A DNA stretch of 62,966 bases, counting the filler, from Octopus bimaculoides (Eukaryota), in assembly GCF_001194135.2 (NCBI RefSeq). It is 7 parts of 7 records of this genome, joined end to end, with 100 filler letters (N's around TTAATTAATTAA, not from the genome) between each part and the next. Parts side by side here need not be neighbours in the genome. Positions count along the whole stretch, not along the records: positions 12,816 to 32,681 come from NC_068984.1; 6 more parts are not named here. The stretch is one strand, 5' to 3'. Position numbers and translations under genes: made by a program. The notes beneath the pieces were generated by a model, which saw only the letters and a program-made list of their open reading frames with translations, was not told the DNA's origin and made no database searches. Each line of letters starts with the position of its first letter. The stretch's first letter is position 1. Below are positions 14,688-30,739 of the stretch, piece after piece.

Positions 14688-14857
14688 CTGGTTTTAACAC
14701 GGCTATCTTCAGGTTTCTCCAGATATACAATAGCTTGATTGTTGCTGGTTACTTGCAAAACTGTGTCGATAATATGTAAAATTCCATTTACGGCATTGAG
14801 GTTTGACCGTATAATGCGAGCACCATTGATGTAGATTTGTTCAGTGTTATCAGAATT
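14688..14857 (-). CDS. FAS1 (fasciclin)-domain secreted protein, coding exon 4
   Basis: Acceptor TCTTTTCTCTTCAG, donor CAG|GTGTGT; 170 nt, phase 0 to 2; NSDNTEQIYINGARIIRSNLNAVNGILHIIDTVLQVTS... contains the FAS1 H2 motif. Confidence 0.93.
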
Positions 14858-15024
14858 CTGAAGAGAAAAGATTTATAAAATGAATGAATGAGTGGGTGAC
14901 TGGGCAGAAAGCAGAATAGATAGACCAAGGGACAGAAGAATAGAAAGATAGTTGGGAACGAGTGGTAAAAAGAAGTTTTGTCCTATGTCTTTGTAACATA
15001 CAAGTGTAAAAAATTAAGTGTCTA

Positions 15025-15230
15025 CTCTTTTACTTGTTTCAGTCATTTGACTGTGGCCATGCTGGAGCACTGCCTTTAGTCGAGCAAATCGACCCCCAGA
15101 ACTTATTCTTTGGAAGCCTAGTACTTATTCTATCGGTCTCTTTTTGCTGAACTGCTAAGTTACGGGAACGTAATCACACCACCATCAGTTGTCAAGCGAT
15201 GGTGGGGGGGGGACAAACACAGACACACAA

Positions 15231-15271
<41 letters not shown>

Positions 15272-15432
15272 TACAACGGGCTTCTTTCAGTTTCCGTCTA
15301 CCAAATCCACTCACAAGGCTTTGGTCGGCCCAAGGTTATAGTAGAAGACACTTGCCCAAGATGCCACGCAGTGGGACTGAACCCGGAACCATGTGGTTGG
15401 TAAGCAAGCTACCTACCACACAGCCACTCCTG
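15025..15432 (-). mobile_element. SINE family A, complete
   Basis: Reverse complement of the 12048 copy, with internal (TA)/(CA) repeat. Confidence 0.9.
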
Positions 15433-15740
15433 CACCTGTTATTTGTTGTATTTTACAGCCCAGTAAGCAGAATGGAATGATGAAGGTAAATACAACTGAG
15501 TAAAAGAGCAAGCACTCAATATACAAAACCATGACCTAATTCTGCTTCCTGATTGAAACCATTCCACACAAATATGGTACAAATAATCCACTACAATGAT
15601 AATCCTCACATATTTACGCCTTACACTACTTAGCATATAATGTAATACATTATATATATATATAGATAAATATGTAAACATACGTAGTCTTACTAATTAA
15701 GCTCAATAAACCAATTGAGAGTAAGTGATCAGGAAGTAAG

Positions 15741-15930
15741 CCTTATACATTTTGAGTTTTCCCTGTACCTTCTGAGTCTTCCCTATATTGTTTGGGTCTT
15801 TCTTGTATCTTTTGAGTCTTGCCTATACATTTTGAGTCTTCCCTATACATGTTGAATTGATCTTGTGCCTTTTAAGCCTTGCCTATGCATTTTATGTCAT
15901 GCTTATACATTTTGAGTCTTCCCTATACAC
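15741..15930. repeat. Degenerate ~20 bp minisatellite, consensus CCCTATACATTTTGAGTCTT, about 9 copies
   Basis: Periodic TTGAGTCTT and CCTATACAT words. Confidence 0.8.
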
Positions 15931-15954
15931 TGTGTTTTGTAAAGCATCATTCAA

Positions 15955-16100
15955 AGCAGCAAGCATGACTGAATGGTTAAGAAGTTTGCTTCACAATTAC
16001 AAGGCTTTAGGTTACATCACACTGAGCAAAACCTTGGACAGGTGTCTTCTACCATAACCTTGGATCAACTCAAATCCTGTGTTAAAATTGAGAAGAAACT
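15955..16100 (+). mobile_element. SINE family A head, old copy
   Basis: Diverged match to 1101-1262. Confidence 0.65.
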
Positions 16101-16299
16101 GGTCGGAGGTATTTAAGATATATAATTTAAGGGTTTAGCTTTATTATACAATATCGCCCTGATTCTGCCTTGTTACTGTGTTAATCTAACAAATGTTTGT
16201 AAAATACTCAGTCACTTTCACCATAATTCAACAAGCAAATAAGTCAATTAATCAAACTGCTGGAACACTCATTGTCAAAACTGGCATGAGATCCATTAT

Positions 16300-16642
16300 T
16301 TTTATGTTACCAGCGTTGCCTTCTAGCACTTGTGCTGGTGGCATGTTAAAAAAATCATCCGAGCGAGGTCGTTGCCAGTGCCGCAGAACTGGCTGCCGTG
16401 CAGGTGGCACGTAAAAAACACCTTTTTGAGCATGGCAGTTGCCAGTACTGTGTGACTGACCCTCGTGCCGTTGGCACGTAAAAGCACCCACTACACTCTC
16501 GGAGTGGTTGGCGTTAGGAAGGGCATCCAGCTGTAGAAAGTCTGCCAGATCAGATTGGAGCCTGTTGCAGCTTTCTGGCTTGCCAGTCCTCAGTCAAATC
16601 GTCCAACCCATGCTAGCATGGAAAGCGGACGTTAAACGATGA
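16300..16642 (+). mobile_element. RTE-type 3' tail repeat
   Basis: Shares about 200 bp with 12816-13045; internal GGCACGTAAAA repeats. Confidence 0.75.
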
Positions 16643-28196: not shown

Positions 28197-28320
28197 CAGT
28201 ATTCCACAACTTTTTTTTGACTTGCGGTACATTTATATTCTTTTCAAAATTTGGCGGCACACCTGAACTAAAAATATAGCTAAAAGTATAGCGAAAAAAT
28301 TATCACTGCGACACACTTAG
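28197..28320. mobile_element. Possible hAT/Charlie-type MITE fragment
   Basis: CAGTATTCCACAACTTTTTTT start and GCGGCACAC/GCGACACAC motifs recall Charlie-like ends; from memory only. Confidence 0.35.
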
Positions 28321-28335
28321 CATTGTTATAAACAC

Positions 28336-28593
28336 CATAGTTGTCAAACTCAGTCTTATGAGATCATGATTGTTCATGAATTTCTGTAAAAATGTTTATT
28401 ACTCGTCTTTGGACGGCGACGATTGCTTTTTCTTTCATTACAAACAGGGTAGTTGTCAAACTCGATCATATCACATGATATCATATGACTGTTCATGAAT
28501 TTCCGTAAAAACTTTTTATTTCTTTACTCCTCTTTGGACGGCGACAGTTGCTTCGAAGTGAGAGCAGAAAGTGAGAGAGAAAGCGAAAGATGG

Positions 28594-28678
<85 letters not shown>

Positions 28679-28920
28679 TGTGTGTGTGTGTGTGCGTGTG
28701 TGAGCGTGTGTGAGAGAGAGTGAAGGCATGGTGTCATGTATAAGTGTCTCTCTCTCTCTCTCTCTCACGCACACACGCACGCTCGCACACTTCCATTTCA
28801 TATATACGTACATACAATTTTCACTTTCTCTTCTCTCTGCTCTCACATCAAAGCAAATGTTGCCTTTCGAAGAGGAGTAATGAAATAAAAAAAACATTAT
28901 GATTGTATTTGACAACTATG
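28336..28920. mobile_element. Long-TIR fold-back element around a (TG)n/(TC)n core
   Basis: Ends CATAGTTGTCAAA / TTTGACAACTATG; internal pairs TTTATTTC.TTACTCCTCTT and TTGCTTCGAAGTGAGAGCAG / CTGCTCTCACATCAAAGCAA; left arm duplicated (28336 and 28450). Confidence 0.75.
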
Positions 28921-29044
28921 CTGCTTGTAACGAAAAAATACCAATATTTTAAATTCATTAAAATTTATAATTTATCTAGTAGATGCTTAGCCCCAGACCA
29001 ACAATGATCGAACAGAGCTAGGTCAGATACATAATTGTCATACG

Positions 29045-29765
29045 AGGGCGGCGAGCTGGCAGAAACGTTAGCACGCCGGGCGAAATACTTGGCAGTATTT
29101 CGTCTGCCGCTACGTTCTGAGTTCAAATTCCAAGGAGGTCGACTTTGCCTTTCATCCTTTCGGGGTCGATTGAATAAGTACCAGTTACGCACTGGGATCG
29201 ATATAATCGACTTAATCCGTCTGTCTATCCTTGTTTGTCCCCTCTGTGTATAGCCCCTTGTGGGCATTAAAGAAATAAGAAACGTTAGCACGCCGGGCGA
29301 AATGCTTAGCGGTATTTCGTCTGTCTTTACATTCTGAGTTCAAATTCCGCCGAGGTTGACTTTACCTTTCATCCTTTCGGGGTCGATAAATTAAGTGCCA
29401 GTTGCATACTGGGTCGATCTAATCGACTGGCCCCTTCCCCAAAANNNNNNNNNNGTCGATTGAATAAGTACCAGTTACGCACTGGGATCGATATAATCGA
29501 CTTAATCCGTCTGTCTATCCTTGTTTGTCCCCTCTGTGTATAGCCCCTTGTGGGCATTAAAGAAATAAGAAACGTTAGCACGCCGGGCGAAATGCTTAGC
29601 GGTATTTCGTCTGTCTTTACATTCTGAGTTCAAATTCCGCCGAGGTTGACTTTACCTTTCATCCTTTCGGGGTCGATAAATTAAGTGCCAGTTGCATACT
29701 GGGTCGATCTAATCGACTGGCCCCTTCCCCAAAATTTCGGGCCTTGTGCCTAGAGTAGAAAAGAT
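29045..29765 (+). mobile_element. SINE family C tandem (Tx1-tailed unit plus headless unit), partly duplicated across a 10-N gap
   Basis: Intact head GGCGGCGAGCTGGCAGAAACGTTAGCACG; junction at 29279; 29164-29443 repeats at 29455-29733. Confidence 0.9.
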
Positions 29766-30482
29766 ATCTGATTGTCATACCGATACCATCCTGAATTCTC
29801 ACGTGTATCTAGGACAGTTGTATTTCAGACGGTAGGAAGTAGTCTGAGAAAACTTTAACAGCTATTTTTAGCCAGTCGAGCGAAAGTGTGGGCTTCAACG
29901 AAAATTTTAAAATTTATAATATCGATGGACTGCATTAGTTAAAAAAAAAAATACTAGCTTACCTGTTGCTTAAGAGAAAGTTTTCTAAATACATAACATT
30001 TATTTCCTTATAAACATTTTAAACCCTCAAGCATTAAGATTTACGCTAGTTTTAAGTCCCTTGTCTTTATAGTAACTACCTTAGGAGGCGAGAGAAGTCT
30101 AAACTGAAATGTTATTATTATATTTTCAAATAGGACAGACGCAAAGGTGGAGGAAAAGGTGTCTGAATCACTGTTACTGCCTGAATGAAGAACGTTATCT
30201 TTGGTATATCACAATTGTTGCTTCGAATCACCACACATACATAAGTGTGTGTGTGTATATACTTGTGTGTGTGTGTGTGTGTAGTGTAGTGTTTGTGTGA
30301 AACTATAAGTAAAAAAAAATATTCAACGATCACTCAGTACTTATATAGAGAGGATATACAGGTGTGTGTATATTCACACATACATACATAAAACACACAC
30401 ACACCTACACACAGACAAAGATACACATACAAGTGCGAGGTAAGACTGAAAGCGAAGGTATAAAAATCTGATAAAAACTTAC

Positions 30483-30635
30483 TTTCGTTAAACCTTCAGC
30501 CTTGATCAGCTCTAAAAGATATTTGTCGGCTTGTACAATTGCGTTGTTATTACTTTCCACAGGTATTATTAATGGGTGAAACAATGTAAGTAAGGATGTA
30601 ATTAAGAAAATTATATTTCCAGGTATGTCAGCCAT
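30483..30635 (-). CDS. FAS1-domain protein, first coding exon (signal peptide)
   Basis: MADIPGNIIFLITSLLTLFHPLIIPVESNNNAIVQADKYLLELIKAEGLTK, donor AAA|GTAAGT, phase 0; hydrophobic N-terminus; an alternative in-frame ATG lies at 30650. Confidence 0.85.
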
Positions 30636-30739
30636 GATGCTTGCAATCATAAACAAATAAATACATGTAGATTGTATATGTGTGTTTGTGGTGGTGATAG
30701 GAAGTTGTGAAGTGATCGTTTGAAATATAAACGAATAAT
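30636..30739 (-). other. Putative 5' UTR part of the first coding exon
   Basis: Acceptor-like TTTAAATTTTGTACGTTTTAG ends at 30740, implying an unlocated upstream non-coding exon. Confidence 0.45.

Follow-up and report, generated by a model that had tools for sequence, protein, structure and literature searches.

Does the minus strand between positions 14,688 and 30,739 of the window (the whole stretch of Octopus bimaculoides DNA that was analysed, 62,966 nt) carry a small gene of its own, or a part of a larger one? A sequence-only reading had proposed a hidden gene of four exons and 200 codons, coding for a lineage-specific, secreted protein with a fasciclin (FAS1) domain. The four exons were found again, but the gene is not hidden: it is already known from RefSeq (XP_014771688.1, 'periostin [Octopus bimaculoides]') and UniProt (A0A0L8HK42, UniRef100_A0A0L8HK42, labelled FAS1 domain-containing protein), and it is concealed only from a bacterial-style ORF track. 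With a probability of about 95%, we regard the four exons as the first third of this ordinary 13-exon gene for a four-domain adhesion protein of the fasciclin type.

The GT-AG splice sites and the phases (0, 1, 0 and a final 2) of the four minus-strand exons were reproduced (Table 1), and the two short exons that had been placed at 17405-17511 and 14688-14857 lie at exactly these coordinates. Joined, the exons give 617 nt, corresponding to 205 codons plus 2 nt from the first ATG (30650) and to 200 codons plus 2 nt from the second (30635), the latter being the length originally proposed. Introns take up about 96% of the span (15,963 bp), in agreement with the earlier estimate of more than 95%. 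Exon 2 has the acceptor TTTGTCAG/ and the donor G/GTAACA, while exons 3 and 4 have CAG acceptors behind polypyrimidine tracts and the donors GTAAGT and GTGTGT, respectively. The codon split between exons 2 and 3 (G/TA, Val) is conserved in Argonauta and Sepia. Exons 3 and 4 had both been described as absent from the ORF track; this holds for exon 3, which is uncovered in its coding frame, whereas exon 4 is covered, but only over its last 71 nt (ORF 14627-14758). Exons 1 and 2 lie in frame within ORFs 30405-30752 and 23157-23513, respectively.

Table 1. Features of the locus on the minus strand, in window coordinates; a slash marks the exon-intron border
Feature	Position	Strand	Description
Coding exon 1	30483..30650	-	168 nt, phase 0 out; donor AAA/GTAAGT; residues 1-56 of XP_014771688.1
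Second in-frame ATG, Met6 (MADIPGN...)	30633..30635	-	context AGCATCATGG, with A at -3 and G at +4
Intron 1	23343..30482	-	7140 nt; N gaps 27314-28070 and 29445-29454 inside
Coding exon 2	23171..23342	-	172 nt, phase 0 in, 1 out; encodes FSGFIQKAKIEESFTSNIARTVFAFTDKAYFELPPERKTSIESMSEKDLEYFVKFFT; also found by tblastn with homologues and as annotated exon
Intron 2	17512..23170	-	5659 nt; N gaps 19629-20239 and 17595-17870 inside
Coding exon 3	17405..17511	-	107 nt, phase 1 in, 0 out; encodes (V)YNRRIQSSEIINNGILKSNSKNQNLLFTSRPSLNT
Intron 3	14858..17404	-	2547 nt; N gap 16910-16919 inside
Coding exon 4	14688..14857	-	170 nt, phase 0 in, 2 out; donor CAG/GTGTGT; no stop codon; annotated exon
Intron 4, first 1872 nt	12816..14687	-	no further exon

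The joined peptide matches the Pfam profile PF02469 (Fasciclin) with 66.2 bits (E 4.1e-18), residues 53-184 covering profile positions 2-122/123 in one stretch; the gathering score of the profile is 22 bits, and coverage of the whole domain was required. Parts of the peptide scored 29.8 (exon 4 alone), 18.2 and 35.4 bits, compared to the 66.2 bits of the whole, and each exon supplies a co-linear portion of the match (profile positions 6-61 in the case of exon 2). The product of exon 1, MIASIMADIPGNIIFLITSLLTLFHPLIIPVESNNN..., comprises a signal-peptide-like N-terminus and the beginning of FAS1 domain 1, exon 3 codes for the middle of this domain, and exon 4 for its end together with the first residues of domain 2 (AIVYLEKPEDSRVKT). 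Both motifs on which the FAS1 assignment had been based are present, the H2 motif NGILHIIDTVL (consensus NGvvHviD.vL) in exon 4 and the H1-like motif TVFAFTDKAYF in exon 2. The latter has Phe where Pro is usual (H1 consensus TxFAPtneAf), a change also seen in Argonauta, Sepia and Saccostrea, and for this reason a strict H1 regular expression found no match over the piece; exon 2 was recognised among stop-free segments and then confirmed by its splice sites and the Pfam profile. When exon 2 was assumed to be 157 nt long, as counted from the first ATG, there were only two candidates, neither of them FAS1-like. The YH dyad between H1 and H2 does not occur anywhere in the full 670-aa protein, FFTVY being found at that place in domain 1. 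This dyad is known to vary among FAS1 domains and its lack was therefore not counted against membership.

The joined peptide is identical to the N-terminus of XP_014771688.1 (205 of 205 residues), and annotated exons 1-4 coincide exactly with the four exons in window coordinates; it is the same gene, with no difference in sequence. The annotated protein has 670 aa and four FAS1 domains (four Fasciclin stretches in Pfam, 219.7 bits, and no other domain), so the supposed complete gene corresponds to exons 1-4 of 13, with three further FAS1 domains still to come. Its CDS is split into 13 exons with GT-AG borders, which span 41.6 kb of the minus strand; exons 5-13 lie outside the piece. The piece ends in a 2056-N gap (L001 27836-29891), and exon 5 is found past that gap, at L001 31347-31503; a tblastn search of positions 12816-14687 with eight homologues gave no match beyond residue ~205. 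A word-index homology search with the peptide of exons 3 and 4 returned nothing, and since the searched collection holds a protein with exactly this peptide, we take the empty result as a limit of the tool and not as a sign of an unannotated gene. Literature searches for octopus periostin, for fasciclin in Octopus bimaculoides and for the accession gave nothing relevant, and neither experiments on this protein nor papers about it came to light. Splicing of the four exons is predicted from the public gene model, homology and conserved intron positions.

Intron 1 is rich in repeats and also contains, on the other strand, a decayed transposase of the pogo/Tigger type. Scans of the piece for tRNAs and Rfam families gave no hits. 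No matching feature was found at position 30739, the upper limit given for the gene, 89 nt upstream of the ATG; it may represent a guessed 5' UTR. The piece and record CM046604.1 of O. bimaculoides GCA_001194135.2, where the locus lies at about 51.49-51.55 Mb, agree at 100% identity with the gaps counted in. As the same N runs occur there, the public chromosome-level record leaves the gaps unfilled. A perfect 280-nt duplication on both sides of the 10-N gap at 29445-29454 shows that the assembly is locally imperfect.

The description as lineage-specific did not hold. Argonauta hians has an orthologue (GAB1606581.1, 'transforming growth factor-beta-induced protein ig-h3-like') of 669 aa with four FAS1 domains, the same MAD... 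at the N-terminus and a hydrophobic tail at the C-terminus. Like the Octopus gene it has 13 exons, and all intron positions and phases (0,1,0,2,0,1,2,0,1,2,0,1) are identical. The two proteins share 57% identity over the full length and 54% over the first 205 aa, exon 4 being 70% identical to Argonauta residues 146-202 (tblastn); the alignment is free of indels at all three junctions and GLTK/F is conserved. The Argonauta introns are much shorter, with a gene length of 16.8 kb compared to 41.6 kb and an intron total of 14.8 kb compared to 39.6 kb in Octopus. The long introns are ordinary repeat-rich octopus introns. Sepia, Solemya and Patella have relatives with four FAS1 domains and N-terminal co-linearity, and additional FAS1 relatives are present in Liolophura and other molluscs. 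Bivalves, gastropods and a chiton are among the sources of related four-FAS1 proteins. Some molluscan relatives carry the automatic NCBI name 'fasciclin-1-like'.

Could the four exons nevertheless form a stand-alone gene whose product is small (about 200 aa), secreted and built of one FAS1 domain? They do encode one complete domain behind a signal-like N-terminus, and read-through of the exon 4 donor would lead to a stop after 22 codons (KTRCVYTVLFFSIFHICLCLNE), so that a short intron-retaining isoform is conceivable. However, exon 4 has a good donor at its end (phase 2) and by then already codes for the first 15 residues of the second FAS1 domain, the annotated protein extends 465 residues further, the junction between exons 4 and 5 is also found in Argonauta, and no homologue as short as this appeared among the closest relatives. 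We consider such a gene very improbable. A dead or unexpressed copy, modelled by the annotation pipeline from homology, is equally improbable. In Logan (assemblies of sequencing runs) no protein with this sequence is recorded, and the divergence from Argonauta (57% identity) is fairly high, but the 670-codon frame is uninterrupted across 13 exons, all junctions are GT-AG with 12 of 12 intron phases conserved, all four FAS1 domains are recognisable, and both ends of the protein, signal-like at the N-terminus and with a hydrophobic tail at the C-terminus, have been kept, as in the orthologues.

Chance open frames with fortuitous GT and AG dinucleotides, possibly brought together by mis-scaffolding, can be regarded as refuted. 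The span does contain five gaps, one of them flanked by the perfect duplication described above, but all five N runs are intronic, with distances of 84-2413 nt to the closest exon border, and no reading frame depends on them. The co-linear Argonauta hians locus, which is gap-free and has the same structure, supports the way in which the exons are ordered and oriented across the gaps, and tblastn with homologues from other species returns all four exons in matching order and on the same strand. Neither the Pfam match of the joined peptide (E 4e-18) nor the 205 of 205 identity to the annotated protein fits with chance. The 13-exon, four-domain gene is the preferred reading.

The public model of XP_014771688.1 uses the first ATG. 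The next one, which lies five codons downstream, is likely to be the true start, as both its Kozak context and the N-termini of the orthologues fit; the Argonauta and Sepia homologues likewise start with MAD.... Judged by eye and hydropathy, the N-terminus has the signal-peptide-like appearance that had been noted, with the hydrophobic core IIFLITSLLTLF (mean Kyte-Doolittle 2.66 at residue 18) followed by Pro at 26 and 30 and by V-E-S ahead of NNN. The n-region contains Asp and neither Lys nor Arg, and FAS1 domain 1 begins at about residue 53, straight after the signal-like peptide. At the C-terminus, judged in the same manner, the small residues GNAA and the spacer QPRLS are followed at the very end by the hydrophobic TVLMIVSLILLLCTHT (Kyte-Doolittle up to 3.41), and the protein ends 30 residues past the last H2 motif. 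Hydropathy peaks at residues ~16-19 and 658-664 only; a further window, at 634 in FAS1 domain 4, is barely over the cut-off (mean 2.01). Similar C-terminal tails are present in the Argonauta, Solemya and Patella homologues.

The N-terminal stretch would represent a cleaved signal peptide, and GNAAQPRLS with the following TVLMIVSLILLLCTHT a putative GPI-attachment signal. Should these two assignments be correct, the mature protein would be anchored on the outside of the plasma membrane and made up of four FAS1 domains in tandem. The term 'secreted' is probably incomplete, the hydrophobic tail being typical of a GPI-anchor signal. FAS1 domains of insect fasciclin I and of vertebrate TGFBI and periostin mediate cell-cell and cell-matrix adhesion, and by analogy the octopus protein is most likely a cell-adhesion or matrix-contact protein. 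A cephalopod-specific role, e.g. in neural wiring or a specialised epithelium, may be imagined, although nothing at this locus points to one.

The biological weight of these results is small, the gene being already public with its XP_ accession and UniProt entry. They do illustrate that a spliced eukaryotic gene was correctly assembled from raw sequence without tools, two short exons to their exact coordinates. Two points concern curation: the second ATG is better supported as start codon, and the product name 'periostin' fits poorly with a protein that lacks an EMI domain and has a GPI-signal-like tail. A wider proposal would make the name a misnomer for a member of a mollusc-wide family of fasciclin-I-type, GPI-anchored proteins with four FAS1 domains, no EMI and no function on record, which in octopods evolved fast (Octopus and Argonauta share 57% identity) and underwent a roughly 2.7-fold, repeat-driven intron expansion; taken as a whole, we consider this unlikely.

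The protein had been assigned to the family of periostin, TGFBI and fasciclin I, and the comparison with these proteins separates the parts of that assignment. Vertebrate periostin and TGFBI (beta-ig-h3) have an N-terminal cysteine-rich EMI domain and four FAS1 domains, with a C-terminal RGD in TGFBI and a hydrophilic, alternatively spliced C-terminal region in periostin. The four tandem FAS1 domains are shared with the octopus protein, and the best-scoring solved structures are those of periostin (PDB 5YJG/5YJH, E 3e-27) and TGFBI (PDB 5NV6, E 2e-23), which explains the automatic name. However, Pfam found Fasciclin domains and no EMI domain in the full protein, residues 1-395 are free of Cys (the first is at 396), the 670 aa contain no RGD motif, and a hydrophobic tail stands in place of the hydrophilic variable region. 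Insect fasciclin I consists of a signal peptide and four tandem FAS1 domains without EMI, and it ends in a hydrophobic tail that resembles a GPI signal. Sequence similarity to Drosophila Fas1 is low, with a match of E 6e-12 to PDB 1O70, which covers its FAS1 domains 3-4, and these pairwise scores do not imply orthology. Judged from domain content and the putative signals at its termini, the octopus protein nevertheless appears to have an architecture of the insect fasciclin I type rather than that of periostin or TGFBI.

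Four minus-strand coding exons can be read in the piece of NC_068984.1 at window 12816-32681, and they belong to a gene that is already known. The piece has 38 % G+C and five N runs and is rich in microsatellites and dispersed repeats; as it is eukaryotic, a bacterial-style ORF list was only a rough guide. Exon 2, for which the sequence-only reading had stated no coordinates, was located by listing stop-free segments, and its product (...ARTVFAFTDKAYFELPPERK...EYFVKFFT) was not picked up by a strict pattern search for H1, a conserved motif of the Fasciclin (FAS1) domain. The acceptors of exons 2-4 are CAG in all three cases, each after a pyrimidine-rich tract, and the donors of exons 1-4 are, in order, GTAAGT, GTAACA, GTAAGT and GTGTGT. 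The exons sum to 617 nt, i.e. 205 codons and two nucleotides from the first ATG, or 200 codons and two nucleotides from the second (30635).

Features of the piece, in window coordinates unless stated otherwise
Feature	Position	Strand	Location	Remarks
Exon 1, coding	30650-30483	minus		from ATG; then donor GTAAGT
Exon 2	23342-23171	minus		172 nt; acceptor TTTGTCAG/, donor G/GTAACA
Exon 3	17511-17405	minus		translation in the frame set by phase 1: YNRRIQSSEIINNGILKSNSKNQNLLFTSRPSLNT
Exon 4	14857-14688	minus		translation: NSDNTEQIYINGARIIRSNLNAVNGILHIIDTVLQVTSNNQAIVYLEKPEDSRVKT
N runs	29445-29454, 27314-28070		intron 1
N runs	19629-20239, 17595-17870		intron 2
N run	16910-16919		intron 3
Decayed pogo/Tigger-type DNA transposon	24212-25761	plus (antisense to gene)	intron 1
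Reverse-transcriptase fragment	19107-19436	plus	intron 2, adjoins gap 19629-20239	Pfam RVT_1, 33 bits, E 6e-8
Short dispersed repeat family	14033-14405, 21968-22039, 29088-29749		intronic	core about 72-155 nt, 76-93 % identical
Second dispersed repeat	15023-15442, 31025-31434, public locus 35739-36160		intron 3; upstream of exon 1; later intron of same gene	about 420 nt, 88-91 % identical
Third repeat	12850-13031, 16463-16643			two copies, about 180 nt, 88-100 % identical
Minisatellite	15742-15941		intron 3	period 20 nt, about 10 units, 65-73 % identity
184-aa ORF	21347-21901	minus (as gene)	intron 2
ORF open to piece edge	32091-32681	plus	upstream of gene	at least 197 aa

An exhaustive HMMER search gave 1525 matches, the top one (E 4.8e-53) being a protein of 669 aa from Argonauta hians that is named 'transforming growth factor-beta-induced protein ig-h3-like' and whose alignment begins at its N-terminus. 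The joined peptide is 54 % identical to it over 192 residues, and the alignment crosses the three junctions without indels, with GLTK/F and the split Val codon conserved. A search using the Argonauta protein led to 'periostin [Octopus bimaculoides]' (670 aa; XP_014771688.1, UniRef100_A0A0L8HK42). The public locus (GCA_001194135.2, CM046604.1, 51,485,066-51,546,668, reversed) matches the piece at 100 % identity, and the 670-aa protein maps onto it in 13 coding GT-AG exons over 41.6 kb, the first four coinciding exactly with those tabulated. The four spliced exons of the sequence-only reading are thereby borne out in detail, in their splice sites, in their phases (0, 1, 0, final 2) and in the identity of 205/205 residues to the N-terminus of the annotated protein. 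The gene is not hidden, being already annotated, nor is it complete in four exons, exon 5 lying outside the piece, past its bounding 2056-N gap. When a word-index protein search was used, a 91-aa query gave no candidate despite its exact occurrence in a protein of the same collection, and therefore negatives of that search with short queries cannot be read as absence.

The Argonauta orthologue is likewise split into 13 exons; its phase series (0,1,0,2,0,1,2,0,1,2,0,1) is that of the Octopus gene, and exons 4-10 and 12 are equal in length. The whole gene spans 16.8 kb in Argonauta compared to 41.6 kb in Octopus; the summed introns are 14.8 and 39.6 kb, respectively, and the difference in size lies mostly in introns 1, 2, 4 and 10.

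In the public model translation begins at the first ATG, TTTGTTTATGA, whose context is weak; around the second, AGCATCATGG, position -3 is A and position +4 is G. In both Argonauta and Sepia the protein starts MAD..., like Met6 of the Octopus protein. From this context and these starts the second ATG is probably the true start, and the earlier count of 200 codons was therefore probably made from it.

That the exons encode a FAS1 domain, as the sequence-only reading held, proved right. With a Pfam Fasciclin (PF02469) threshold of 22 bits, exon 4 alone scored 29.8 bits, exons 3+4 35.4, exon 2 alone 18.2 and exons 2+3 28.9, while the joined peptide of exons 1-4 reached 66.2 bits (E 4.1e-18) in a single stretch over profile positions 2-122 of 123. 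Four separated pieces on the same strand, taken in order, therefore build one complete domain. With homologues from other molluscs, tblastn found the same four exons in unchanged order.

All five N runs are in introns, and since the nearest is 84 nt from any exon edge, the reading frames are independent of them. The gaps cannot be closed from the public chromosome-level record, because it contains the same N runs, and exon order and orientation across them are supported by the gap-free Argonauta locus, where the same exons follow one another in unchanged order. The 10-N gap at 29445-29454 is directly flanked by two copies of 280 nt with 100 % identity (29165-29444 and 29455-29734); the pair has the look of a duplication made in assembly or gap closing, not of a genuine tandem repeat, and, sitting in intron 1, it leaves the gene unaffected.

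In the pogo/Tigger-type element two ORF fragments match Pfam DDE_1 (E 5e-9 and 2e-7), a weak HTH fragment lies upstream, and the reading frame is in several pieces. The RVT_1 match identifies the reverse-transcriptase fragment as a retroelement remnant. The short dispersed repeat family, with six copies in the piece, every one intronic, looks SINE-like; no tRNA-like part was found by ARAGORN or Rfam. The third repeat has a 61 % relative at 22484-22544. The 184-aa ORF, outside the annotated CDS and with no Pfam match at E 0.1, is probably transposon debris, and the ORF at the piece edge, which adjoins a 3109-N gap of the public record and has no Pfam match, may represent the N-terminal portion of a retroelement ORF.

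Pfam recognises four FAS1 domains in the full 670-aa protein and nothing else. Strong hydrophobic stretches are confined to its two ends, except for a window at residue 634 in FAS1 domain 4 (mean 2.01, barely above the cut-off). The N-terminal stretch (residues about 12-25, IIFLITSLLTLF, with prolines and V-E-S after it) would be a cleaved signal peptide, and the C-terminal one (TVLMIVSLILLLCTHT, after GNAAQPRLS) a putative GPI-attachment signal. The mature product would then be a set of four FAS1 domains anchored at the outer surface of the cell membrane and, by analogy with fasciclin I, TGFBI and periostin, for which such adhesion is established, would most likely adhere to other cells or matrix. 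A literature search found no paper on XP_014771688.1.

The gene had also been taken as lineage-specific, which it is not, as it has relatives with four FAS1 domains, N-terminally co-linear, in Sepia, Solemya and Patella, and further FAS1 relatives in Liolophura, Saccostrea and Pinctada. By sequence, the best solved relatives are periostin (E 3e-27) and TGFBI (E 2e-23), ahead of domains 3-4 of Drosophila fasciclin I (E 6e-12). The octopus protein does not qualify as a periostin/TGFBI family member, as two features that define the family are missing: it has no EMI domain (Pfam), and it lacks the RGD motif and hydrophilic C-terminal region. Its FAS1 domain 1 starts about 25 residues past the signal-like peptide, and its first cysteine is residue 396. 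The domain architecture agrees with that of fasciclin I.
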